18,000 bases of DNA from Takakia lepidozioides (Eukaryota > Plantae > Bryophyta): positions 1-18,000 of the forward strand of contig JAKLZA010000142.1 in assembly GCA_030704615.1 (NCBI GenBank). The letters are read 5' to 3'. Below the pieces are notes generated by a model. The model was not told where the DNA came from and ran no database searches. It worked only from the letters and a program-made list of their open reading frames with translations. The position numbers were made by a program, and so were the translations under genes. Below, one piece after another: positions 706-18,000 of this stretch; the stretch's first letter is position 1; every line of letters starts with the position of its first letter.

Positions 706-3230
706 GGAAGATAATAGGAATAATGTAAGAACTTAATGCAAGCGCGTCAGGACGGTCCAGCCCTGACACCCGTACCGCCGGTTCTTCGCCTCCGGCAGAC
801 ATCGAAAGGCAGCCGGCTGGGCTCGGTCAATCCCTCCCCACCCTCGCCCTCATCCATCGCGTCGTCGCCCCAGGCGCGTCGTCGCCTCCCCCCCCCCCTG
901 CGTCTCGTTCTGCGACACCAGTCCCCGCTTCCAGCAGTCCGCCAGTTCCTGTAACCCCCGCCCCGGGTTCAACCATCACCCCCATGTAACCCTCTGTAAC
1001 TCCGCCGAGTGTAACCCACATTACCATGTAACCTTTGTAACCCATTAACCCCATGACCCTCTGTAACCCATGTAACCCTCTATAACACCGCAGAGTGTCA
1101 CCCCCACCCCTATGTAACCCTCACTACATGTAACCCTCTGTAACCCATAAAACCTTATAACACCCGCAGAGTGTCACCCCCACCCTATGTAACCCTCACT
1201 ACATGTAACCCTCTTAACACTTTGCAACCTATGTAACCCTATGTAACCCTCTGTAACACCGTAGAGTGTCGCCCTCACCCCTTATGTAACCTCCCTCCAT
1301 GTAACCCTCTGTAACCCATGTAACCCTCTGTGACCCTTTGTAACCCTCACCACCATGTAACCCTCTGTAACAACCGCAGAGTGTCACCCTCACCCGTATG
1401 TAACCCTCATTCCATGTAACCCTCCTGACCCTCTATACCCACTCCATGTAACCCTCTGTGACCCCTATATCCCTCACCAGGTGTAACCCTTACCTCCATG
1501 TAACCCTCTGTAACACCGCAGAGTGTCACCCTCGCCACCATGTAACCCTCACTCCATGTAACCCTCACAAACCCTCTGCTCTGTAACCTATAACCCTCTG
1601 TAACACCCTAGAGTGTCGTCCTCACCCCTTATGTAACCCTCTATAACCCATGTAATCCTCTGTGACCCTTGTAACCCTCACCACCATGTAACCCTCTGTA
1701 ACACACGCAGAGTGTCACCCTCACCCCTATGTAACCCTCACTCCATGTAACCCTCTCTGACCCTCTATAACCCTCACCACCATGTACCCCTCTGTAACCC
1801 ATGTGACCCCTCTATATCCCTCACCAGGTGTAACCCTTACCACCATGTAACCCTCTGTAACACCGCAGAGTGTCACCCTCGCCACCATGTAACCCTCACT
1901 CCATGTAACCCTCACAAACCCTCTGTGGCTCTGTAACCTATGTAACCCTCTGTAACACTGTAGAGTGTCGTCATCACCCCCTTATGTAACCCTCTGTAAC
2001 CCATGTAACCCTCTGTGACCCTTTGTAACCCTCACCACCATGTAACCCTCTGTAACACCGCAGAGTGTCACCCTCACCCGTATGTAACCCTCATTCCATG
2101 TAACCTCTTTGACCCTCTGTAACCCTCACCACCATGTAACCCTCACCCATGTAACCCTCTGTGACCCTCTATATCCCTCACCAGGTGTAACCCTTACCCT
2201 CCATGTAACCCTCTGTAACACCGCAGAGTGTCACCCCCTCGCCACCATGTAACCCTCCGTAACCCTCACAAACCCTTTGTGACACCGCAGAGTGTCGCCC
2301 TCACCCCTTATGTAACCCTCACTCCATGTAACCCTCTGTAACCCATGTAACCCTCTGTGACCCTTTGTAACCCTCACCACCATGTAACCCTCTGTAACAC
2401 CGCAGAGTGTCACCCTCACCCGTATGTAACCCTCATTCCATGTAATCCTCTCTGACCCTCTGTAACCCTCACCACCATGTAACCCTCTTTGACCCTCTAT
2501 ATCCCTCACCAGGTGTAATCCTTACCACCATGTAACCCTCTGTAACACCGCAGAGTGTCACCCTCGCCACCATGTAACCCTCCGTAACCCTCACAAACCC
2601 TTTGTGACACCGCAGAGTGTCGCCCTCACCCCTTATGTAACCCTCACTCCATGTAACCCTCTGTAATCCATGTAACCCTCTGTAACCCATGTAACCCTCT
2701 GTAATCCATGTAACCCTCTGTAACCCATGTAACCCTCTGTGACCCTTGTAACCCTCACCACCATGTAACCCTCTGTAACACCGCAGAGTGTCACCCTCAC
2801 CCGTATGTAACCCTCATTCCATGTAACCCTCTTTGACCCTCTGTAACCCTCACCACCATGTAACCCTCACTCCATGTAACCCTCTGTGACCCTCTATATC
2901 CCTCACCAGGTGTAACCCTTACCTCCATGTAACCCTCTGTAACACCGCAGAGTGTCACCCTCGCCACCATGTAACCCTCACTCCATGTAACCCTCACAAA
3001 CCCTCTGTGGCTCTGTAACCTATGTAACCCTCTGTAACACCGTAGAGTGTCGTCCTCACCCCTTATGTAACCCTCTGTAACCCATGTAACCCTCTGTGAC
3101 CCTTTGTAACCCTCACCACCATGTAACCCTCTGTAACACCGCAGAGTGTCACCCTCACCCCTATGTAACCCTCACTCCATGTAACCCTCTCTGACCCTCT
3201 GTAACCCTCACCACCATGTAACCCTCAGTA
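706..3230 (+). repeat. Left TIR (~2.5 kb): unique outer segment 706-~950 plus C-rich TGTAACCC satellite array ~950-3230
   Basis: 706-843 differs from the right end at only 2 positions (734, 779). The inner end TCACCACCATGTAACCCTCAGTA (ends 3230) matches the right-arm TACTGAGGGTTACATGGTGGTGA (starts 15629) in inverted orientation. Confidence 0.93.
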
Positions 3231-3250
3231 TCACCGCCTCGTGTACATCA

Positions 3251-3308
3251 TACACGTGTAAACTATCCGACGGCCGAATGGAGGTTTAAATAGAGGCCGA
3301 AACCCTAA
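3251..3308 (+). promoter_or_regulatory. Candidate plus-strand promoter just inside the left TIR: G-box palindrome, TATA-like box and telo-box
   Basis: TACACGTGTA 3251-3260, TTTAAATA 3285-3292, AAACCCTAA 3300-3308, then pyrimidine-rich sequence. Motif match only; no expression evidence. Confidence 0.4.
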
Positions 3309-3402
3309 TTTGCTCTCTCCATCCGTTTCCAGATTCTTAGCTCGCTCGTTTTTTTGCTTTGGGGCATCAGCTTTCTGCAATTCCCATGGTGCCCAATCGG
3401 CT

Positions 3403-3780
3403 TCACACATCAATGCGAAAGATTTGTAGTTCATTCAGTTCAGTATCGTCATCCCAGCAACATACAAGACAACTCTTTCCGTGCAACGATCCGTCAAATT
3501 TATTACCACGGTTTTCTCTACGATTGATACGGTTGTCTCTATTCTTTTTCTTTCTCAATGTCATTCTTGTTGTTTTGTCACCGTCCCCGATGGCTATGGT
3601 ATTCCTAAGATCCGCATTAGGAAAGGGTTTTGTTTCTTTCGGTCTAGCCATGCAAGCAGCCGCTCATTTGACGGGGTGCCCATTCACTCTCCTCTCGTGT
3701 ATCTTTTGTTCACACACCAGCCGGGGCAGCCTACTCATCGCTATTATGGATGCAATACGTATCGAATCATGCGTGTTTTG
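3403..3780 (-). pseudogene. Decayed inverted paralog of the zinc-finger exon of the accessory gene
   Basis: The minus strand reads CEQKIHERRVNGHPVK*AAACMARPKETKPFPNADLRNTIAI, versus CGAVKVDKSRLNRHIVDGTAACMARPKGTKPFPDAELKHAMAV on the plus-strand gene. 3589-3660 vs 4795-4866 match at 56/72 nt. A TGA stop aligns with a Gly (GGA) codon. Boundaries are approximate. Confidence 0.75.
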
Positions 3781-4548
3781 CAAGCACTGTCAACCGGTTA
3801 CATGTCTGATGGTTTATATGACTACCTCACGTGTGGTATGGTTACACACAGGGGGTTACACGGTGTTTTCTTTCTCAATACATGCTAGCTTGGTAGACGG
3901 TTTAGTAATGGAGGTTTAGATGGGTTGACATGTTTGATGGGTTACGTGGATGTTGCGCTCGCGGAGCCACATAGGCTAGGGTTACATGGGTGGGGCATTA
4001 CATTGACCATGTTTACCTGGAGGTTGCATACTAATGGTTTGATATGACAGGGTTACATCGATGTTGTGTTCGGGAGTCACATAGACTAGGGGTACATGAG
4101 GTTGTGACGAAGGGTTACATCATATCTGGGTACCTGACGGAGGGTTACACTCGACGTGCCTGGCATTCGAGTAACGGCCGGTTTGTCGCGCTCACAAGTG
4201 TAGGGTTACGGGTTACACTCCGCTATTCCGGGTGACACCGGGATTGCAACTCATACACGTGTGAGTCAGTGCGGATATAATTGATTGCAAGCCGCCAGAT
4301 TTTAATGAACCGCCGTCTTTCGCTTAACCGACGTGCCTTACGGGTGACATCTAGCTAGCTTCGTTCTTCGTTCTTTGATCATTGTTCAGTTTTCCCCTTC
4401 TCGCAGCCATTCATATTCTTCCTGCACTCCTTGCTGTGCGTGCTCCCTGTTGTGCATTCTTCGGAATTCTCTTGGTCTTGGTCTTTTCTTGTCTTGTCTT
4501 TTCTTGCTCTTGCTCTTCTCTTCTCTTCTGTCAGCTTTTTCTTTTGTC

Positions 4549-7500
4549 ATGGCTGATTGTTATTTGTTCCCTGGAGAGGCTACTATTCCATTTGATCACT
4601 TGAAAAGGGATGGCGAACGAGTTCGCTTTTGGTACACTGAGCATGAGCATGCTACAATGATCGCGTACTGCCACACCAGGTGTAGAGAGGCCAAGGTGGA
4701 GGGAGCAAAGGGCCGGCCTAAGTTCAAATGTCCTTATTGTGGGGCAGTAAAGGTAGATAAGAGCAGATTGAATCGGCATATTGTCGATGGAACGGCCGCA
4801 TGTATGGCCAGACCGAAAGGAACAAAACCGTTTCCTGATGCGGAGCTCAAGCATGCCATGGCTGTTGAAAATGTGATGAATTCTGTTCCAGCTTCTTCTG
4901 TTGATGCATATCATGCATGGATTCTGCAAAATAGGGTGGCTTTGGGTGAGATTGCAGATCCTATTGAAGTGCCTGCTGTTGTACCTTCTTCGGCTATTTC
5001 TGCTACAGAGGTTCCATCTTCTAGTGCTCCTGCTGTTTCTGTCCCTGGTCCTTCTATTCGGCAGGTTTCTAACGAGAGAGACAAGCGGCGATTGAGCCCG
5101 CCTCTACCTGTCCCTATTGCAAAGAAAATCAACATTGCAAACCGGGGAAACCGGAGCTCAAGGTTCATCTTGCGAAAGAGAACTCCAGGCTCAATCCTTC
5201 TGCTACCGCATGGCCTTATTCCTCAGTTCCCATTTCCGAATGTCAATGAGAAGGGGTTTTGGCCGGCATTCCAAGAATTTGTTGCGCGAGGCGAGGGCGC
5301 AGTCCATGCGACAGCTGCAAAATCAAGTTGGGTTCTATCGACAGACAATCAAGTTGGATTCCCTGCCATTTCTCTGTTTTTCAAATTTTGGGCTGTTGTC
5401 TATCCATGTAACCCTTTGTGTTACCCCCCTGTCTCTCCTGTGGCGTGTAACCCAGAGTGTAACCCACCTACAGAGGACCCCTTTTAAAAACCCCTATGGT
5501 GTGTAACCCACCTCTGTGTAACCCCGTGTAGCCCATCTTGTTTGTAACCCATTTTCATGTGTAACCCCTCGTGCTGTAACATTTTTCTCTGGTGTAACCC
5601 CTCACGCTGTATTGCGCAGGGAGGTCGATATCATCTTAGAAGCGATGATATGGACAGTGTTGTTGCTGCCCACAAGGCATTTACTGCCCAGCCGGATCAT
5701 GGTCCGTTAATGATAGAGGAATTGAATCGGGTGAAGGAGTATTTAGAGAGCATTGGGCATCCTGACATGCCAAAGCAGAAAAAGAAAAAAGGTGGGAGAC
5801 TTACACGAGTCCATCGAGAGAGCCAAGCCTCACATGATGATGACACGATGGACGAACTAGCTGTTGGCAATACCGACCTTGACGATGCCAGAACTTCAAA
5901 TCCTCTTGTCATCACTATTACTGTAGATGGAATCAAAGGTTTGGTTGTTCCACATCCGTTGGAATTCACTCGTGGTTTTGCCGAAGGATTGATCAGTCAA
6001 ATGGAGAATCTCACCAAACCGCACATTGGACCGCCACCACTCCTTTTGAGAATTCTAGCCCACAACGATGTAAGAAATCATGGCAGGTCAGTTTCCCAAA
6101 CGCATCCCAGGTTGGGGTTCACGACTGAACTTCTGGAAAGTGCTCTTACGGCCTCAAAGGTGAAGGACCTGGTCGATGAGTATTACGGCTTTAGTCTGAT
6201 GTACTTTGCACAACCTGGTGACGGAATTGCGACCTTGGATTCTGAGCTCGAAGACTTAAGATCGAGTTTGAGTACAGAAGAGTGGGGTGACCGGTCAATT
6301 AAGATCAACGGAGCTATACAGTTTTGCAAGGCAAGCCGTCGTCGCGCCGCCCATCACTTTGCGATCCAACAGAGAGAATCGTTTATCCAGCTTTGGTGTT
6401 GTGGCCTCTTCAGCGAATCACCAACAGAAATGGACTTCAATGCGCGTTTGGGCATCCAGTATATGAGAGACCTTGGGTCTGTAGTGCCTTGGTATCTCTG
6501 TAAGTGTTACTCCATCCACTGTCACCCCTCTCGTCGTGTAACCCCTTTGTGTGTAATCTTGTAATCATTGTAACCCTCGCTATGTGGAACCTTGTAACTC
6601 AGTGTAACCCTCGTTGTGTGTAACCCTGTAATCAGTGTAACCCTCGGCTATGTGGAACCTTGTACTCAGTGTAACCCTCGCTGTGTGTAAATCAGTGTAA
6701 CCCTCGGAGTATGTAACCCTGTAATCAGTGTACCCCTAATGGTACCCCTCGCTGTGTTACCCTAGATTTGTTACCCTCTCGTTGTGTAATCTCAGTAGTG
6801 TAACCCATGGTAGTGTAACCCATTGCAAACTACTGTCTCTAACAGGGTGGTGTAACCCATATCGTGTAATCCGAACCACTGTCTTGTCCTAGTCAGTGTA
6901 ACCCTTACATAGTGTAACCCTTGCACTTTCAAAAACCTCGTTCCACGACTAAAAACCTTTGTCTTTTCCCCGATGCAGATGAGTCCGAGCTCATGACCAA
7001 TCAAGTCGCCAATGCGTTCAAAAACCTTTTTGAGGCTCAACGTGAGCTTCACGAAGTTGTGTATGGGGCCCCTCCACAATGCGATACAGGGGGCGTAGGG
7101 GGCGCGCAGACGAGCGATGGGCCAATTTCCGCCCCGCAGAGCGACGATGTACATGACGAGGACATCATTCCAAGTCAATCTGCCGTTGTATCTTTGTCGC
7201 AGGTTGGTGAATTGTACTCAACCCAGCTGCACTTAGGGGTGAACCTAGCAGACTTGACGCGGGATTTGCCCATGATTTCTGATACTGATACTGAAGATGA
7301 TACATCAAGGTGGAACACCCAAGTGCGAACCTCTTTGTCCGCAGCCCCAGTCATTTCTTTTGAAGGTCTTAATCGAAGAATCGGGGACCCGCTTGACCCA
7401 GAGTCTGTGTATGACTTTGAATCTGGAGATGCTGGGTTGAACCCTCGATGCAGCAATGTAAGTATTTGTCAGGATCATGTGGTCAACCTCTCTCAGAATG

Positions 7501-10072
7501 ACCCAGCCTTCGTGGGTCCCATTGATGCGCAGGGTGACTCTGCAAGGGGAGGATGCCCTGAAACCGAGGGTTACACTGCACCTGAGGGTGACACTGTGCA
7601 GAGAGGAGCAACAGGGAAGGAGGGTTACACTGCACCTGAGGGTGACACTGTGCAGAGAGGAGCAACAGGGAAGGAGGGTTACACTGCACCTCAGGGTGAC
7701 ACTGTGCAGAGAGGAGCAACAGGGAAGGAGGGTTACACTGCACCTCAAGGTGACACTACGGATACCGGTGTGGCTGACAATGTCGTGAGGGACATTGTCG
7801 TGGGTGACACACCATTGCCCGTGAACACTGCAACTTCCGTTGAGAGTGACATTGACATGGGTTACACTGATAGGGGTGACACCCCACAGCCAACCCACAT
7901 GGTAGATGTCAGTGAGTGTAACACTGTCATGGATGACATTCCACTACCACTAGTCGTGGAAGGTGACACTCCTTTGCCACGGCCACTAGTCGCGACGGAT
8001 GACGGTCTTCTGCTAGTCAACATGGTCTTGGAGGGTGCGGAGAAGGGCGACACAAACAAGGATGGCATTGAGGAGGTTGATGCAAAGAAGAGTGACATCG
8101 ACATGGGTGACACGGGGAAGGGTGTCACCGAGGAGGTTGTCAGTTGGAAGGGTGACACAAAGCAGGGTCACACTGAGAAGCGTTTCACTGTGGAGAGTCA
8201 CGAAGAGAAGGATGTTGCGGAGCATCTAGACACTGAGAAGAGTGACACTGCCAAGGGTGACACACATAAGATTGTTACTCAGCAGAGTGACACTGGGAAG
8301 GAACCCGATGAGAAGGGTGACACTGCGAAGAGTGACACTGATAATGCGGCCAAAGAGAAGGGTGACACTGAGAAGGTAGCCGGAGAGAAGGGCGACACTG
8401 AGATGCGTGACTCTGAGGAGGTAGCTGAAGAGAAGGGTGACACTAAGAAGAGTGACACTGAGGAGGTAGCCGAAGAGAAGGGTGACATTGAGAAGGGTGA
8501 CACTGAGAATCGTGACACTGAGGAGGTAGCCGAAGAGAAGGGTGACACTAAGAAGCGTGACAAGGGGTTTGAACAGAAGGGTTACACTGACAGGGGTAGC
8601 ACCGAGGAGGTGAGCTGTGACACTTCTGCCCTTGGTCAATCACCTTCCCAGCACGTCTCAGACGAGGGAGTGCAGTCTTCAGCACTTGCAGCAAACTCAG
8701 AACAAGGCACCTCTGGCTCAGAAATTCCCCCTATCGGCGGCATTGTCAGGGTTGCAGAGAATCCCAGGAGGTCAAAACGGCCGCCTGCTCAAAGAAAGCG
8801 GTTGGCTGAACCCCCTAGCGCTGACAAAGAAGTATCTGTTCTTGTCGCACCCAAAAAACAGCGAACCAAACCGAAAGGCAAAAGTGCAGGGGTCTCGGAG
8901 GTTGACGTTGTCCAGCAGCAAGAGGTCCTGCCAAGCACTTGCGGGAGCGTTCGAGGTACCTCATTGTACTTTGATCCTCTCTGATTTTGAATATTGATTA
9001 TAACTCTTGTATGATGCATCGTAATGTTCGTAATGTGCGGTTTGTTGTGCAGACTAAAACAACGGTACTTGACAAAGTTCAGAATGGTGTCGGACCCTCC
9101 TGGGGCGCCCGAAGTGAAGTTTTATTATGGCGATGCCTTCCTGGCTTCTAGTCCGTTACAGTTTTACTTGGAAGAGACAGATTTTGAGCCGATGTATAAA
9201 ATAAGAGCAACTGTCACAGATGCATTGCTCTCGGGTTACAACAAACTTCTGGAGGCCAAATTGTTTAAGGCTATCGCACCTGAGTTTGTCATCTGTGCTC
9301 CTTTTCAATGGCATGTCATGCGTACCAATGGTAACGATCTGCAGACGCTATTCGGGTTGGTGCAAGAATGGTACACTCAGGATGCCCGAGGGATGGTGTT
9401 CACAAAGAATCGAGATCTTGTGGACGTGGTTGTCATCCCTATTGTCTTCGAGTAAGTAATTTCAGCATTGACTGAGCATGTTGGGTTACACTCCTCTATT
9501 CTAGACTGAGTTGCACTAGTGACTGCTGACTAGTTGTGTAACACCGTTTAGAGTTACAGTACAAAGGGTTACACTACTGGGTTACACCACAATGGGTTTC
9601 ATTGGAGATGTTTTTTTCTATTCTGACGTAACGGCTTTGTTTGTGTTGCAGTGATCACTGGAGTGTTGCTGTTTTAGAGCGCCGAGGTCGGATAGTACAT
9701 TTGGACTCCCATAAAACCATTGCCCGACCCAAACTCATTGAAGGAATTTTGCGAAATTTTGCCATAGCGTTCTTTGATTTCATGCCTGGATCTGATGACT
9801 TCAGTTACGTCATGGAGAGGATGGAATGGTTTGAGGCCAGTGTCCCCCAACAACGGAGCTGTTGGGAGTGCGGCTATTATGCACTTTGTTTTGTGCAATT
9901 TTACTTGGAGTGGAAGTTCAATGTGAAAACCACAGAAGATCGAACCCGTCATAGGCGGGCGTTTACTGCAAGTTGGTTCAACGAGTCAACCATGATAGCT
10001 TCCCGTACTCATATGATTAGTTGGCTGTGTGACGAGATGGACAAAGACTTGGTCAGATGGCCAAAGAAATAA
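4549..10072 (+). CDS. Spliced TE accessory gene: C2HC zinc finger + unknown domain + acidic repeat linker + Ulp1/SENP-family (peptidase C48) protease. Exons 4549-5352, 5620-6499, 6979-8955, 9053-9451, 9652-10072; ~1,493 aa if one base is restored near 8911
   Basis: ATG at 4549 follows a CT-rich leader. Introns 5353-5619 (phase 0), 6500-6978 (GTAAGT..GCAG, phase 1) and 9452-9651 (GTAAGT..GCAG, phase 2) join the ORFs in frame. Intron 8956-9052 joins in frame only if one base is added near 8911 (giving VDVVPAARGPAKHLRERSR/LKQRY). Exon lengths sum to 4481 nt. The 5353 donor (GTTGGA) is weaker than the others. Confidence 0.75.
4723..4803 (+). other. C2H2-like (C2HC) zinc finger FKCPYCGAVKVDKSRLNRHIVDGTAAC
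   Basis: F-x-C-x2-C-x12-H with the conserved L-x-x-H. The probable fourth ligand is a Cys after a 7-residue gap. Confidence 0.7.
5400..5605 (+). repeat. TGTAACCC motif cluster in intron 1 of the accessory gene
   Basis: Repeated (G)TGTAACCC with variable spacers inside intron 5353-5619. Confidence 0.8.
6515..6920 (+). repeat. CAGTGTAACCCTCG motif array in intron 2 of the accessory gene
   Basis: Dense AGTGTAACCC copies, including a duplicated ~34-bp unit containing GCTATGTGGAACCTTGTA. Confidence 0.85.
7566..7757 (+). repeat. Coding tandem repeat, 54-bp unit x ~3.5 (EGYTAPEGDTVQRGATGK)
   Basis: Units start at 7566, 7620, 7674 and 7728 (partial) and are nearly identical. Each full unit carries GGGTTACAC and GGGTGACAC. 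Confidence 0.95.
8040..8590 (+). repeat. Coding degenerate 15-bp-based repeat (AAGGGTGACACTGAG; K[G/S]DT pentapeptides)
   Basis: Recurrent EKGDT/KSDT/RDTE peptides encoded by variants of GGGTGACAC. Confidence 0.85.
9053..10072 (+). other. Ulp1/SENP-like cysteine protease domain (split by intron 9452-9651)
   Basis: Spliced VVIPIVFD-DHWSVAVL (His 9656-9658), HLDS (Asp 9704-9706) and VPQQRSCWECGYY (oxyanion Gln 9851, Cys 9869-9871) follow the canonical C48 motif order. Confidence 0.9.
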
Positions 10073-10119
10073 ATAGCGTCTCTTGATGCATTTTTGCTTC
10101 TATGTGGTTTGTTCGTAAC

Positions 10120-11310
10120 ACTTCATAGTTTGGGTTTCATGCAATGGGCTTACATGGGGTTACACCTTATAAGGTTACATGAAGTGGAATCATAGACAAG
10201 TACTTGGGTACACCTTTGGGCCCTGGGGCAATGGGCTTACACTCTGTGGGTTCACACATAAGTGATGGGTTACACCATGCCGGGTCTCACAACGTGGGGT
10301 TACACTTATGGGTTACATACCTGGCTATGTCAGGGTCACGTTGCTGAAACAGTATACTTTCGTGGCATGTAACCCCACCTCGACTATGCGCATTTGTTTT
10401 ATTTTTTATTTTTTTCGCACTGAAGTGTTTGTGCACTGAAGTTCTCAGATTTATACTACATGGGGTTACATACATGAGGGCTATGTACAATGGGTTACAT
10501 ACGATGGGGTCACAATAGTGTGGGGGTAACATCTGGTCGGGCTACATACTTCTTGGAGTTACAACACTCTGGGTTACACTCACTCAAGAGGGTTACACAG
10601 TTCTAAGTTACACTGTGCACAATGAAAGTGGGCAGGGTTGCCTATACAAGGGCTACGTGTCGTGGGGATACATAAGATGGGGTGATGTAGCATCGGGGTT
10701 TATAGCGTGCACCCCAAATTGTACAATGGGTTACATGCGATGGGGTGACATCAATGGGGGTTACATATGGTCGGGATACATACTTCTTGGGGTTACACAA
10801 CAACAAGTTACACTCCGGAGGGCTACACTGGTCCATAACATAGGTTGAACGGAATGATTATCTATCTCATGGATTACACGTCCATGGGTTACACACAAAT
10901 TGGGTTACACATAGAGGGGTTACACATACAGGGGCTAGTGTTGGTGACTAAAGGTGCTCGACTTCAACATCTTCCCACTCTGTATTGAAGGGTCATGTAA
11001 CCCCGGCAGACTAACCCAGACCCTGTAGTCACATTGTAGTCACATTGTTCTCAGAGTTACACCACTGACAGCAATATTCTATGGGGTTACATACTAGGTT
11101 ACACTGTTGATAGTTACATTGCAGTTACACTTGGAGTTACACCACAATGAGTTACACTGAAGAGGTTCACACTCATCTGTGTTACACTGTGTGGAGTACC
11201 ACAGATGCAAGTTACACTAAGTAGAGCTATGTTACGTTATGAAACCCCAGACAGTGTAACCCTGCGGTGTGTCACCCCGGCCCATGGGTGTCCCATTGAG
11301 TGGGTTACAT
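10120..11310 (+). repeat. Intergenic spacer between the convergent genes, saturated with dispersed TGGGTTACAC motifs
   Basis: Dozens of GGGTTACA/GAGTTACA copies, mostly in one orientation. No credible ORF. Confidence 0.8.
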
Positions 11311-11421
11311 AGGTTGAATGTGGATGGAATGGCAAAGTGAATAACAACCCATGAACAGACATGTACTTCATATTAAACTTGGTGATCACAAAGTAAGTGT
11401 CATTGCCAATGGACTCAATGG

Positions 11422-14400
11422 TCACTTACTACGGAACCGGTCTACAAAATCTACTTTCCTGGCAAGGGACATGTTGTTTCCATCATCATTTTTTATGAAT
11501 GGAACTGCTTGAAGAGGGTGCAACAGACCTTTGTCGATTCTAACTTGTAAAGTGGACAGCCTCCCACGAACACAACGAAGCTCGGCAAGCAAATGTTTGC
11601 GCATTGTTTCACTCTCATTGCCAAGAAGCGACAGGGACTTCATCTCAGATTCAATTGATGAAACATCCGATGGCTCCTGCCGACCACGCCGGGATGATGC
11701 TGAGCACTCCGTAGGCTCTGCTAGATTCACAACTTCCTCCTCTGCATCAATATCTGGAAGTTCCGATTTCATCAACATGTGAAGACCTCCATGAATGGTC
11801 CCGAGCTTTGTGCCACAGAGCTTCACAATAAGCCCTTCCTTCAGATTTGGCTTCATCAATTGAAGAACGCGGATTTGATGTTTGCACAAGTTACCCTTCA
11901 AAGCCCATGGACAATCGCAACAAGCCCAGGTGGTCGCAGGTGCATAGATTGTGTAGCTTCGACCGGCCGTTTGAACACTATCCACAATCGCCGGATGACC
12001 AGGAACAGTGGGCAAATGAACATTGACATCAGGGATCTCCCTTGCAGTCCAAACACATTACTGATAAATTCCTCCTGTCGTACATTCCTTTTGAAGCCTT
12101 TCGATTTTCAAGTTATCTCTATACCAATAGTGGGTTAGAACAGGACCCACGAGTTCGCTGATCAGCCAATCGATTCTCCTGCCATCAAGCCTTTGCTTTC
12201 CCGAGCGTAAACGAGCCTTCAAATTTCCGTGCCAAGATTCAATTGCGGCATTAGTATCCTGACTTGCGTGGGGAATATAACGAGCCCCCGTGATCCACAT
12301 GCTCAGTTTTGGGACCCATTCCATTCTGATGTAACGTAGGAAGTCACGCGCAAGCGGATAGGAATAATTCAAATCTTCCAGTCGCTCCAGCGCCCACTCT
12401 TCTGGGGTGACTCCCACACAGGCGTTAATGCCGTACATTACGTCGCCAAGCTGTTTCAAAACAGCATTGCGAGTGTATGGATCGGGCATCTTACGCCACG
12501 AATGTTTCAGCCAAGCGCGGCGAACATGCCAAAGGCATAGAAATATTGCTACGTCCCCAAACGATTCCCTGCACGCACACACATCAAATGCCACCCAATC
12601 CATCAGTGTAACTCTTGTCAGTGTAACTCTTATCAGAGGAACTCTTCGCAGTGTAACTCGTAGAAGTGTAACTCTTCAAAGTGTCACTCTTAGTAGTGTG
12701 ACTCATGTAACCCTCTCGTGCATCTGGTCATGTAACTATCAGTGAAACTCACAGCAGTGTAACCCAACACATATAACCCCTCGCAGCGCTGTAACGCAAT
12801 CCATGTTACACCGTGTAACTCTCAGAGCGACCCAACCCATACACCCTCTGCGATGCTCCCAGTGTAACTCACATGCTATAGCAGTGCAACCTAATCCATG
12901 TAGGACTGCGGATGACACGCCGTGTAACTCCCTGTGTAACTCGCAGTGTAACCCTCTGTCTACCTCATAGCAGTGTAACCCTCGGTCTAACTCACAGTAG
13001 TATAACCCTCGGTCTAACTCACAGCAGTGTAACCCTCCCCTCCGTCCAACTCAAGGCAGTATAACCATCTGTCTAACTGATAGTGTAACCCTCAGTGTAA
13101 TAGACAGCACTGCAACCCAATCCATGTAACCCCTCGAGCAACTGACAGTGTAACTCCAAGTGTTACAGGCAGCAATGCACCCCCTCGTGTAACTGGCAGT
13201 TTAACTCTTACTGTGATTCTCAGTGTAACTAGCAGCAGTGTAGCCCGATCCATGAAACCCCTCGTGCATGCAACTTGTAGTGTGACTCAGAACATTGTAA
13301 CTTCTAGCCGTGTACCTGATAGCATTGATTTCTGCGTCTGCATCGTCGACAACAAAAGCATTTGGCCTCCAATCTGGTTTGCTCTGAAGAAGTCGGTCGC
13401 GAAGACGTTTCATCCAGGGGCTCAAGTCAGTCGTTTTGTTTCTCGCTGATATAATATAAGCAACAGGTATGCCGTTGAGCCATTCGTCGAACACCATCAT
13501 GGTATACATTGGGAACTGCAATGTCGCAATGGTACAAAAATGAATAAGGTGAGCGTTAAAATATTGGCAACAGTTGCATGGCACTCACATTTCAGAATGC
13601 AATGAAAGGTAAAGCGTGACACGAATACCTTATTTTCGTTGGTCCCAAATGTTGCATCATCGCAGGATACCACACGGTTGTGTCCCAAGTCGATCATTTT
13701 CTGTTTTTGCCACTCCGTTTGTATTCCAATTACGAACTTCAAATCACCCGCCACTGGCGCTGTCTCTTCATGGTAGAAAAGACGCTTTCAGGATTGCTAT
13801 TGACCCACATACGTACACTTTGTGCATCATCTGGATGTTTTTTTGTAACTCTCAATCGCAAGCTTGTCGGCAATGTTTCTCACGTCGTACTCGAACAAGA
13901 AACAATCGCGACTCCACTCCATGCCTGGCTGAGACGCACAAGCTTCCTGGAGTTGTTGAGTGTGTTGTGTCATAATCATAGCTGGAGATAGGCCACTGCG
14001 AAGACTATCGACGATCCACTGTTTCATATCTTGGCTGAGACGAGGGGCATGCACGAATCGCGAGAAATGGAAAGAGGGGTCAGCTGACCATGACATGGCT
14101 TTCCTTTTGCATCCACATGCTGTTTCTGGAAGTATTGTATGATTGCCAACTCTGAATCTAGAAACACTGGCCAACTTTGAAGCTACACGTACACCCACGT
14201 TTGTATGACTCTCCGAAATCCGCTGCCTTACGTCTGATTCGCTTGACTGTTGTTTTGATTATCGGAGGCTGCTATCGGTTTTTCTTTTTTCTTCTTCACA
14301 ATCGGCGGGTCCGTGCGCCTATCTATCGGGCCGTAGCAGCAGTGGTACCTGCAAAAAAGCATATAAAGCGAGGAGGGTTATCGCCATATACGACTTTGCT

Positions 14401-14782
14401 AGACTAGCAGAAAGAAGTGGGGCTGGGAATGTTATACAACCCTCATAAGTGACTTACTTATGCCACTGACGATAACTGTTTGCACGCGGTGTTGTCAATC
14501 TGGCAACTTCACTGTACCTTCGATCTTGAACATAAAATTGGGTCTTCCCATCCACTCTACTACCTTTCTCCCTCCAAAAGTCAGGAATGCGAGACCATGG
14601 AACGACAGCTACTTCGATGGATATCCGTTTCCCTTTTCCCTGGGAAACCTGGCGTATCCAACGGAGGTTTGTGTGATTGAAAAGCCCGTCTAGGGCAGCT
14701 GTAGGATGCATTTCAAATGAGATACCAAATGCTGCAAATGACAGAGTTCTCCCGCCTCATCTTTCAAACCATTTGATTCCAT
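11422..14782 (-). CDS. MULE-family DDE transposase with C-terminal SWIM zinc finger, frameshifted as written. Exons ~14782(or 14711)-14458, 14348-13629, 13515-13316, 12568-11422
   Basis: Motifs in order: YHCCYGP, KRGCTCSF, QHVDAKGKPCHG, HPDDAQSVRMWV, FVIGIQTEWQ, DATFGTN (D1), VFDEWLNGIPVAYII, FVVDDADAE (D2), FLCLWHVRRAW (CxxH), TNAAIESWH (E), CDCPWALKGNLCKH (SWIM). GT-AG introns 14349-14457, 13516-13628 and 12569-13315 are phase-compatible. About seven 1-bp indels are needed to read through. The start codon is uncertain. Confidence 0.9.
12604..13300 (+). repeat. CAGTGTAAC[T/C]C array in the 747-bp transposase intron
   Basis: Seven units at 15-bp period (12604, 12619, 12634, 12649, 12664, 12679, 12694), followed by ~29-bp units around 12945-13080. 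Confidence 0.85.
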
Positions 14783-15039
14783 GCTGCTTTGCGTTCCTCG
14801 TCTAGCACTTCGCGCAGCACATGCCATTAGCAGCAACAATACCACCAGTACAGTACAATCGCATAACTACACGCGGCAACGCAGCGGAGCCCTCGGGCTG
14901 CACGTCGTCTACGCACCTGGTGAAATGCAGCGATGATGGAGTTACACGTGGTTTTGATGTCACCGAATCGTGTAACCCAGGTTTGAATTCAAATATCTGA
15001 CACCTCTTGGAGCCCGCCAATTTTTGCCGGGCACTAAGG

Positions 15040-15628
15040 GCTACACGAACAGGGGTGACATGCGTTGGGGATAAAGGATCCGGGTGACACGAGCTATGAG
15101 TGACCCAATCGGGGGTTACAACGGGGGGATTGATACAGTATCGGGGTTACATGGTGGGGTTACAATGTGAGAGTTGCACAATGAGGGTTACACGAGGCGG
15201 AGCTAAACGCTGACGTGCAGAGGGTTACAGGGATGATGGGGTTACGAGGAACTGGAGTTACACACGGAGAGGGGGTATATGGTATAACATGATACAAGCT
15301 TACATTGGGGTTACACGATGCAGGATAACATGGAGTGAGGGTTACACCTCGCGGAGTAACAGAGGGTTACTGGGTTACAAAGGGTTACAGAGGGTCATGG
15401 GTTACATGGGTTTACAGAGGGTGACATAGGTTTACATGGGAAGGGTTACATGGAGTGAGGGTTACACTCACGGTGTTACAGAGGGATAAACGGGTTACGG
15501 AGGGTTACATGGTGGGTGAGGGTTACACCCTGGTGATGTTACAGAGAGTCACAGAGGGTCACATAGGTGTTTTACATGGAGTGAGGTTACACAGGTTATG
15601 AGGGTGACTTCTAACTCTGACAGAGGGT
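15040..15628 (+). repeat. Degenerate GGGTTACA array internal to the right TIR, upstream of the transposase
   Basis: Many GGGTTACA/GGGTGACA copies with diverged spacers. There is no inverted counterpart inside 3230 on the left. Confidence 0.75.
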
Positions 15629-17390
15629 TACTGAGGGTTACATGGTGGTGAAGGTTACACCTGGTGAGGGTTATAGAGGGTCACAGAGGGTTACATGGGT
15701 TATAGAGGGTCAGAGGGTTACATGGAGTGAGGGTTACATGGGGTTACATGGGTTAGGGTCACAGAGGGTTACACGGGTTACGCAGGGTCACAGAGGATTA
15801 CATGGGTTACAAGGAGTGAGGGATGCATAGGGATGGGGTGACACTCTGCGGTGTTACAGGGTTACATGGTGGTAAGGGTTACACCTAGTGAGGGATATAG
15901 GGTCACAGAGGGTTACATGGGTTACAGAGGTTACAGAGGGTCAGAGAGGGTTACATGGAGTGAGGATTACATAGGGGTGAGGGTGACACTCTGCGGTGTT
16001 ACAGAGGGTTACATGGTGGTGAGGGTTACAAAGGGTCACAGAGGGTTACATGTGTTACAGAGGGTTACATGGAGTGAGGGTTACATAAGGGGTGAGGGTG
16101 ACGCTCTACGGTGTTACAGAGGATTACATGGGTTACAGAGCCACGGAGGGTCACAGAGGGTTACATGGAGTGAGGGTTACATGGGGATGAGGGTGACACT
16201 CTGCGGTGTCACAGAGGGTTTGTGAGGGTTACGGAGGGTTACATGGTGACGAGGGTGACACTCTGCGGTGTTACAGAGGGTTACATGGTGGTAAGGGTTA
16301 CACCTGGTGAGGGATATAGAGGGTCACATGGGTTACAGAGGGTTACATGGTGGTGAGGGTTATAGAGGGTCAGAGAGGGTTACATGGAGTGAGGGTTACA
16401 TAGGGGTGAGGGTGACACTCTGCGGTGTTATAGAGGGTTACATGGTGGTGAGGGTTACAAAGGGTCACAGAGGGTTACATGGGTTACAGAGGGTTAGGGG
16501 TGAGACGACACTCTACGGTGTTACAGAGGGTTACATAGGTTACAGAGCCACAGAGGGTTTGTGAGGGTTACATGGTGGCGAGGGTGACACTCTGCGGTGT
16601 TACAGAGGGTTACATGGAGGTAAGGGTTACACCTGGTGAGGGATATAGAGGTCACAGAGGGTTACATGGAGTGAGGGTTACAGAGGGTCAGAGAGGGTTA
16701 CATGGAATGAGGGTTACATACGGGTGAGGGTGACACTCTGCGGTGTTACAGAGGGTTACATGGTGGTGAGGGTTACAAAGGGTCACAGAGGGTTACATGG
16801 GTTACAGAGGTTACATGGAGTGAGGGTTACATAAGGGGTGAGGGCGACACTCTGCGGTGTTACAGAGGGTTACATAGGGTTACATGGGTTGCAAAGTGTT
16901 ACAGAGGGTTACATGTAGTGAGGGTTACATAGGGGTGGGGGTGACACTCTGCGGTGTTATAAGGGTTACATGGGTTACAGAGGGTTACATGTAGTGAGGG
17001 TTACATAGGGGGGGGTGACACTCTGCGGTGTTATAGAGGGTACATGGGTTACAGAGGGTCATGGGGTTATATGGGTTACAAAGGGTTACATGGTAATGTG
17101 GGTTACACTCGGCGGAGTTACAGAGGGTTACATGGGGGTGATGGTTGAACCCGGGGCGGGGGTTACAGGGAACTGGCGGACTGCTGGAAGCGGCGGACTG
17201 GTGTCGCAGAACAACGACGCAGGGGGCGACGACGCCGATGGGATGAGGGCGGGGGTGGGGAGGGATTGACCGAGCCCAGCCGGCTGCCTTTCGATGTCTG
17301 CCGGAGGCGAAGAACCTGCGGTACGGGTGTCAGGGCTGGACCGTCCTGACGCGCTTGCATTGAGTTCTTACATTATTCCTATTATCTTCC
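15629..17390 (-). repeat. Right TIR (~1.76 kb): G-rich GAGGGTTACA satellite array plus unique outer segment ~17165-17390
   Basis: Inverted copy of the left arm built from the same sub-modules (e.g. GGGTGACACTCTGCGGTGTTACAGAGGGTTACATGG), with fewer array units. Confidence 0.93.
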
Positions 17391-17432
17391 AATAAAGTCT
17401 TACAAATAAAGTTTTACAAATAAAGTCTTACA
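17391..17432 (+). repeat. 14-bp tandem triplication abutting the right TIR
   Basis: AATAAAGTCTTACA / AATAAAGTTTTACA / AATAAAGTCTTACA. Confidence 0.95.
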
Positions 17433-17542
17433 GGGTTTCATCATGTTTCAAATTTGTTCTAGCGTGAGCCTACACCAGCATTCCTCAGGAAACTCAAACA
17501 ATTACAAGCTAAAGACTATGTTTATGTGATGCTTTCATACAG

Positions 17543-18000
17543 GCCAAACAATGAGTAGAGAACATCTCTGGCAGGAGTTCTTCTCAGATCCTTCACAGTG
17601 GTGAGACAACAGGGTGATAAGGTGAGGCTAGGTTTAGTGAGGACGTGAGAAAGTCTGTCAAGTAGAGCTTCCGATTAAGAACTGGCATGATGATATTTCT
17701 TGGACCGGGATTGTATCTTGGGTTGTTGAGATTAATTGAGAAATCTGCTCGAACACATGGAAAGCGGTTCTTGTTATGAGTAGGTTGTCCCTCCTTGTCA
17801 GCAGGGCAGAAAGCAGCTAGGTGCCCTGCTATTTAAACGATGCTTCGAGCATGGCGGTTACAGCATCGTCTATGCGAGGCTGTGGTTGGAGCTATGGCTG
17901 CTCAGCTGTCCCAAAGGGTTTTCCACACAGGAGCCCAAGTTCCCCCGACTTCAGAAATAATGATCCTCCTTGGGTGAAAGCGGAGCTGGCTGCCATTGTG
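17543..18000 (+). pseudogene. Decayed host gene fragment with an OSB-type PDF motif (organellar ssDNA-binding motif); runs off the window
   Basis: 17551-17613 reads MSREHLWQEFFSDPSQW*DNR, with TGA at 17602 in place of the second W of WWDNR, and a donor AG/GTGAGG at 17622. 17932-18000 reads SPSSPDFRNNDPPWVKAELAAIV, lacking the usual HK...ALWL segment. The match to the PDF consensus W..FF..P..WWDNR..K....PDFK is from recall. Confidence 0.65.

Follow-up and report, generated by a model that had tools for sequence, protein, structure and literature searches.

A candidate VANDAL-like anti-silencing system without a detectable VANC domain in a moss Mutator-like element

Why should one short DNA word recur through a transposon, and which of the element's proteins would read it? 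The question is raised by a Mutator-like element (MULE) of 16.7 kb that occupies, as one unit, positions 706-17390 of an 18,000-nucleotide stretch of the Takakia lepidozioides genome (contig JAKLZA010000142.1; hereafter the window). Next to its transposase gene the element carries an accessory gene with a predicted product of ~1,490 amino acids, composed of a zinc finger, an uncharacterised domain (domain X), an acidic linker and a C48 (Ulp1-like) protease. A preliminary description of the window proposed that this fusion protein binds the word and removes SUMO from the element's own chromatin. On the sequence evidence, the motif pattern is real and non-random, with comparative support across the clade; related elements pair homologous finger and X sequences with other words, and the pattern is found without Ulp1. 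The explanation we favour, at roughly even odds, is that in this clade of moss MULEs finger and domain X would read the family word, with the protease optional and anti-silencing the outcome.

A short word amassed in non-coding DNA

The motif GGGT[T/G]ACA occurs 268 times in the window, where 2.53 occurrences are expected (200 dinucleotide shuffles, shuffle maximum 8). Two terminal arrays hold 63% of the copies. As the preliminary description had stated, the word also stands upstream of both genes, in four introns, in the spacer between the genes and in exon 3 of the accessory gene, and regional counts bear this out (Table 1), with no copy in accessory intron 3. Its placement in both terminal inverted repeats (TIRs) needs qualification: it holds for the inner modular arrays, whereas the outer ~230 bp of each TIR contain no motif. 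The exons for folded domains (all but the exon 3 linker) hold a single motif copy in 4.9 kb, and the bias towards non-coding DNA is correspondingly marked (p 1e-12). The 1.3 kb of flanking DNA has no copy, only the single 7-mer GGTTACA already reported, which lies in the right flank; since only ~0.1 copy would be expected there, this absence is weak evidence taken alone.

Motif orientation is constant inside each block, flips between blocks and is independent of gene direction, which points to a signal in double-stranded DNA and not in RNA; a role as an RNA-level or splice signal was rejected on this ground. Consensus sequences made per block retain the core, and the flanks are specific to each block. 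The layout is thus VANDAL-like, as had been suggested: a family-specific word in non-coding DNA, built in separate blocks. In exon 3 all 29 of 29 GTNACAC sites lie in one frame. They differ in the amino acids that they specify (G/S/C/R, D/Y/N/H, T), but hardly at all at synonymous positions, the Gly codon being GGT in 21/23 cases at motif sites versus 13/44 elsewhere. Both the frame and the codon pattern could come from duplication alone.

The commonest motif context, AGGGTTAC, has 7 bases in common with a TTAGGG-type repeat; identity with a telomeric repeat was rejected, TTTAGGG being absent from the window. Separately, a 40-nt motif-bearing piece of intron 4 (9548-9587) is unchanged in the X9 and X10 contigs, where its flanks are different and carry further motif copies; other loci may thus have motif blocks in common with the element.

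Related elements, their fingers and their words

Contigs of the same clade, numbered with an L, were found via a transposase profile. The preliminary description had proposed, as a test, to ask whether related families carry different motifs with co-diverged N-termini; the outcome is favourable, since these contigs have both different words and a diverged, homologous finger. Transposase and accessory genes converge in the window, and this tail-to-tail layout is common to related elements, including one in Ceratodon: a finger gene is so placed in L013, L016, L007 and L006, and a domain X gene in L002. L013 is a complete element of 10.7 kb with 428-bp TIRs and a 9-bp target-site duplication. Two Cys, one Tyr and an Arg-Leu pair are invariant in the finger across elements; the C-x2-C-x12-H pattern is kept in four elements, with Cys as fourth ligand. 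Exon 1 of the accessory gene matches the L007 finger at E 2e-5, is homologous also to that of L016, and beats 2000/2000 shuffles against a profile built without it. Exon 2 aligns weakly, in colinear order, with its counterpart in L013 and L016 (E 0.006 and 8e-4), a level reached by 1/2000 shuffles; domain X is common to L013, L016 and L002, and, as we read the sequences, a phase-1 intron marks its end in L013 as in the window.

The words are GTGACACT in L002, L010 and Ceratodon L015, GTAACACT in L009, where a 20-bp tandem array holds part of the copies, GTAACATG in L013 and L016, GGA[A/G]CAGG in L006 and L007, and GGAACACT in L012; GGAACAGG is also listed among the family-specific dispersed words of relatives. 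They exceed the shuffled maximum in L013, L016, L006, L002, L009 and L015, and none was seen in the relatives' flanks. L013 and L009 show a bias towards non-coding DNA (p 3e-5 for each element); in L002 such a bias is not clear (p 0.08). The load is ~1-3 words per kb in relatives versus 8 per kb in the interior of the window. The words form a series centred on G[GT]N[AG]CA that follows the transposase tree, in which the window branch is long and unsure. L016 additionally has a second word, CGGCACTT, with 9 copies at 15808-16498, upstream of its accessory gene.

Is the protease part of this pattern? The window, L002, L010 and Ceratodon L015 have an Ulp1 domain, those of the window and L002 being barely alignable (E 0.01). 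None was detected in L013, L016, L006 or L007, all with finger, X and motif. As L013/L016 and L006/L007 have motif and finger-X without Ulp1, the protease is unneeded for motif build-up, and this weakens the SUMO idea. L014, finally, is a complete 6.5-kb element with TIRs and a 10-bp duplication that carries a transposase only; it has no enriched 8-mer.

Three relatives contain further features. In L012 the transposase is followed, on the same strand, by unclassified open reading frames without a Pfam match (12845-14233), possibly a further accessory gene or a host gene. L014 has a fragment of an RNase H1 N-terminal (Cauli_VI) domain at 12448-12678 (E 5e-16), and L015 a foldback-like insertion between transposase and Ulp1 gene (~13300-18000), its ~1.1-kb arms rich in GACGGCC.

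Anatomy and condition of the Takakia element

The finger residues include Cys 4729, His 4777 and a last Cys at 4801. The Pfam match is C2H2-type and weak (E 0.002-0.05, under cut-offs), and in PDB the finger profile retrieves DNA-binding C2H2 fingers, the finger here being single and having Cys as fourth ligand. A BED finger was considered and is unsupported by Pfam. Domain X has no homologues in Pfam, in a word-indexed database search or in Atlas; full HMMER gave one match to exon 2, the repeat-rich C1q protein P0001, which is spurious. Structures modelled for exons 1 and 2 from single sequences reach a predicted local distance difference test (pLDDT) score of 36-38. The earlier statement that no VANC-like gene is recognisable stands: with E values up to 1-2 allowed, neither the exons nor the relatives gave a Pfam match to a VANC domain (DUF1985, DUF287, PMD/MAIN-like), and the domain X profile retrieved no VANC chain from PDB. 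At the other end of the protein the C48 catalytic residues are intact (His 9656, Asp 9704, oxyanion Gln 9851 and Cys 9869, the position previously named as catalytic), and exon 5 gives weak PDB matches to an Ulp1-like protease and to the deNEDDylase SENP8. The spliced models were searched one exon at a time, which makes the Ulp1 domain and the transposase harder to pick up.

Two runs, presumed to be RNA, contain a paralogue of the accessory gene, ~83% identical. Its X9 contig appears to be spliced: it skips 493 letters with 226 between, that is 267 nt, exactly the intron at 5353-5619 (phase 0). Splice phases are consistent for introns 1, 2 and 4. For intron 3 they require one more G behind 8929, a base present in DNA run X1, so that in this copy one of three things would apply: a frameshift, an assembly error, or use of a weaker donor at 8966. 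X1 also has an extra C behind 5423. Single-base indels in short one-base runs at 5423, 8929, ~13780 and ~13835 may be long-read assembly errors. Over 4549-4960, the differences listed against the paralogue comprise 15 residue-changing and 10 silent codons, an incomplete list from which the accessory N-terminus appears to diverge fast. Over 4549-10072, a run with only 3 million contig letters contains 86% of the stretch's words, which suggests a multi-copy family. A paralogous finger fragment occurs in runs of a second organism.

Membership among MULEs rests on the SWIM-finger MULE DDE transposase and the long TIRs. The transposase matches the SWIM domain above the Pfam cut-off and the MULE domain weakly. 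It is 35-58% identical to Ceratodon purpureus P0136 (itself a match to PF10551, E 2e-13), and its nearest named relatives are Ceratodon proteins, which makes a moss the most likely host. An in-frame stop codon, TAA, interrupts it at 12058-12060, and the frame is broken in exons 1-2, in every located case at a single-base run; exon 2 carries two compensating frame shifts (~13780 and ~13835). The ends are complementary (706-855 versus 17241-17390) at 98% over 150 nt and at 91% over 400 nt with gaps. No target-site duplication of the 9-11 bp typical of MULEs is present at 706/17390; as L013 and L014 did duplicate their targets (9 and 10 bp), the copy is probably rearranged at a flank. A 14-bp repeat, present three times at 17391-17432, directly adjoins the right end, and the right flank may be rearranged. 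With a broken transposase and no target-site duplication, the copy looks damaged. Neither the transposase nor a 35-mer from an array found a match in metagenomes.

Table 1. Positions of the parts of the element in the window, with motif counts
Feature	Position	Strand	Details
Left TIR, outer motif-free part	706..940	+	starts GGAAGATAAT
Left modular array	941..3240	-	101 motif copies; 9-19-bp subunits, ~95-195-bp higher-order units
Motif block upstream of accessory gene	3781..4350	+	8 copies
Accessory exon 1	4549..5352	+	single C-x2-C-x12-H-x7-C zinc finger after basic stretch
Accessory intron 1	5353..5619	-	267 nt, 8 motif copies, phase 0
Accessory exon 2, uncharacterised domain X	5620..6499	+	
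Accessory intron 2	6500..6978	-	predicted; 14 motif copies; GTAAGT donor, CAG acceptor, matching phases
Accessory exon 3, acidic low-complexity linker	6979..8955	+	20 in-frame motif copies, GDT/GYT/SDT repeats
Accessory exon 4, Ulp1-like domain front half by position	9053..9451	+	splice sites predicted; no Pfam match alone
Accessory intron 4	9452..9651	+	3 motif copies
Accessory exon 5, Ulp1/C48 catalytic part	9652..10072	+	Pfam Peptidase_C48 PF02902, E 8.5e-5, above cut-off
Spacer between convergent genes	10073..11421	.	21 motif copies
MULE/SWIM transposase gene	11422..14782	-	predicted exons ~14782-14458, 14348-13629, 13515-13316, 12568-11422
Last transposase intron	12569..13315	-	7 exact motif copies and many GAGTTACA variants
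Motif block upstream of transposase	14900..15628	+	grades into right array; 18 copies in 14801-15628
Right modular array	15629..17170 (start approximate)	+	67 copies; segments 96-100% identical to left array
Right TIR, outer motif-free part	17171..17390	-	no target-site duplication

What reads the word, and comparison with known systems

From the likeness to VANDAL elements we infer the following. The accessory protein, with its finger, domain X and optional C-terminal Ulp1-like protease, would recognise the short family-specific word that the element has amassed in its non-coding DNA. By binding where the word is dense it would hold copies of its own family in a transcribed or unsilenced state, which is what VANC does for VANDAL. 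Since two families have motif and finger-X without Ulp1, and the transposase-only L014 has no motif, finger and domain X probably form the reading part. A single zinc finger reads 3-4 bases, so reading the whole word would call for a contribution from basic flanking residues, domain X or multimers. Consistent with such a reader are the core that stays constant across blocks, the non-coding bias, the motif-free L014 and the spliced paralogue in the presumed RNA runs, together with motifs in introns and spacers kilobases from the ends and an outer TIR free of them. Several observations weigh against it. The finger and domain X homologies are each weak individually, the word of L007 equals the shuffled maximum without exceeding it, and L014 is the sole transposase-only control. 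In L012 a word is mildly enriched (8 vs 0.3) and no finger gene was detected, the ends of that element being unlocated. Since the words track the transposase tree, kinship alone would account for the co-variation of word and finger. Finally, a comparison of the two arrays shows substitutions to be as frequent in the core as in the spacer (7/480 vs 13/849), and so reveals no selection on single motif copies.

The tree and L012 also speak for the main rival explanation, which we regard as unlikely, namely that the transposase itself reads the motif, the arrays being end-pairing sites of foldback type, the internal copies extra, and activation the work of the transposase. The concentration of copies in the terminal arrays fits this account, and there is a precedent in AtMu1, whose transposase alone binds a TIR motif and demethylates cognate ends (bioRxiv 10.64898/2026.08.24.746577). 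That transposase acts at termini, however, whereas copies in L013 lie mostly in internal introns and the spacer, the outer TIR here lacks the motif, and L014, complete and with a transposase, has none. Less probable again is the proposal that the fusion protein attaches to the motif and uses its protease to strip SUMO from the element's chromatin as the anti-silencing step. The VANDAL-like layout, the lack of a detectable VANC domain and the family-specific words support part of the proposal; the intact His-Asp-Cys and Gln, the recurrence of Ulp1 in L002, L010 and Ceratodon L015 and its retention in KIU-type VANCs (PMC13317346) would suit the SUMO step. What weakens that step are the two families with motif and finger-X that have no detected Ulp1, the presence of SENP8 among the best, though weakly matched, structural relatives, and the view that KIU domains are unlikely to act on SUMO (PMC6117577).

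Could the pattern have arisen with no reader at all? A seed word amplified by slippage, copied by conversion or template switching and surviving where coding constraint is absent would produce uniform orientation inside blocks, arrays whose core is no better conserved than their spacers, and exon 3 copies all in one frame, as expected from tandem duplication; the 40-nt intron 4 piece, unchanged in another context, also agrees. We nevertheless think neutral spread improbable, slightly more so than SUMO removal: the core is kept though flanks are block-specific, introns of relatives carry 1-2 isolated copies each with no tandem context, and words of related form are found again in families that share only 43-50% transposase identity. 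Least probable of all, in our estimate, is that the element exploits a host factor, of the telobox/TRB type or another transcription factor, that binds the word. The resemblance of AGGGTTAC to TTAGGG-type repeats speaks for it, as do reports of TRB proteins in mosses. Against it, the window lacks TTTAGGG, the relatives' words GTGACACT and GGAACAGG are not telomere-like, and each family has a different word, even L002 and L013, which come from one sample.

We thus return to an accessory reader built from finger and domain X. A more specific version, which we put forward only tentatively and hold to be doubtful, is that moss MULEs evolved a sequence-specific anti-silencing system independently of eudicot VANC, its finger and X co-diversifying with the words, and that some families, that of the window among them, added an Ulp1-like protease that would remove a ubiquitin-like mark from silencing factors on the element. 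The clade offers natural controls (families with and without Ulp1, families with different words, and one without an accessory gene) that make both the function of transposon-borne Ulp1 domains and the co-evolution of reader and word testable, and a relative is present in Ceratodon purpureus, a moss used in the laboratory.

How does the element compare with known systems? The closest likeness is to VANDAL and its VANC proteins, including the KIU (KAONASHI) type. In both, a MULE with an accessory gene has amassed a short motif in introns, spacers and ends, as the 8-9-bp words bound by VANC are in VANDAL (PMC5735166); in both the motif differs between related families (PMC5735166, PMC13317346), and Ulp1 is present in some accessory proteins and absent from others. 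KIU-type VANCs with Ulp1 target their own motifs, the role of the protease being given as unknown in a review (PMC13317346), and another review is sceptical of an action on SUMO by Ulp1 domains carried on transposons (PMC6117577). An Ulp1 domain fused to a motif-targeting anti-silencer is therefore less novel than the preliminary description implied, being known from these Arabidopsis proteins (PMC13317346). The differences are that the moss gene has no DUF1985, DUF287 or PMD/MAIN similarity and a C2H2-type finger plus domain X instead, and that the moss element has long modular TIRs and two genes, where VANDAL has non-TIR ends and three genes. It thus probably works like VANDAL/KIU and falls outside that group because no VANC domain was found and because its ends are neither non-TIR nor degenerate. 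VANC is reported to be dicot-specific and MAIN-derived (PMC13547354). As motif-targeting Ulp1 fusions are known but the VANC domain was not found here, convergence is the probable origin of the moss version of the VANDAL-like trick.

Other systems share single features. Foldback-type MULEs have kilobase inverted arms of short tandem subunits and unequal lengths, and so resemble the modular arms here; in the moss element, however, the subunit word recurs through the interior. Family-specific motif clusters that mirror element phylogeny are likewise found with Spm TnpA and the AtMu1 transposase, both of which act at termini, whereas moss motifs also fill internal introns and spacers. A Peptidase C48 domain in an accessory gene is shared with the Ulp1-carrying MULEs of Arabidopsis, melon, rice and grapevine, and C48 is recurrent in active TIR elements (PMC12973397); the moss domain differs in being fused to a zinc finger and domain X. 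Ulp1-carrying MULEs are long known, and a literature search turned up no account of moss MULEs in which a zinc-finger accessory gene goes with family-specific words. Dedicated accessory proteins with sequence-specific anti-silencing are known for eudicot VANCs and for Spm TnpA; if the explanation favoured here is true, a moss clade would show the same genomic signature with an unrelated protein, and the strategy would have arisen again.

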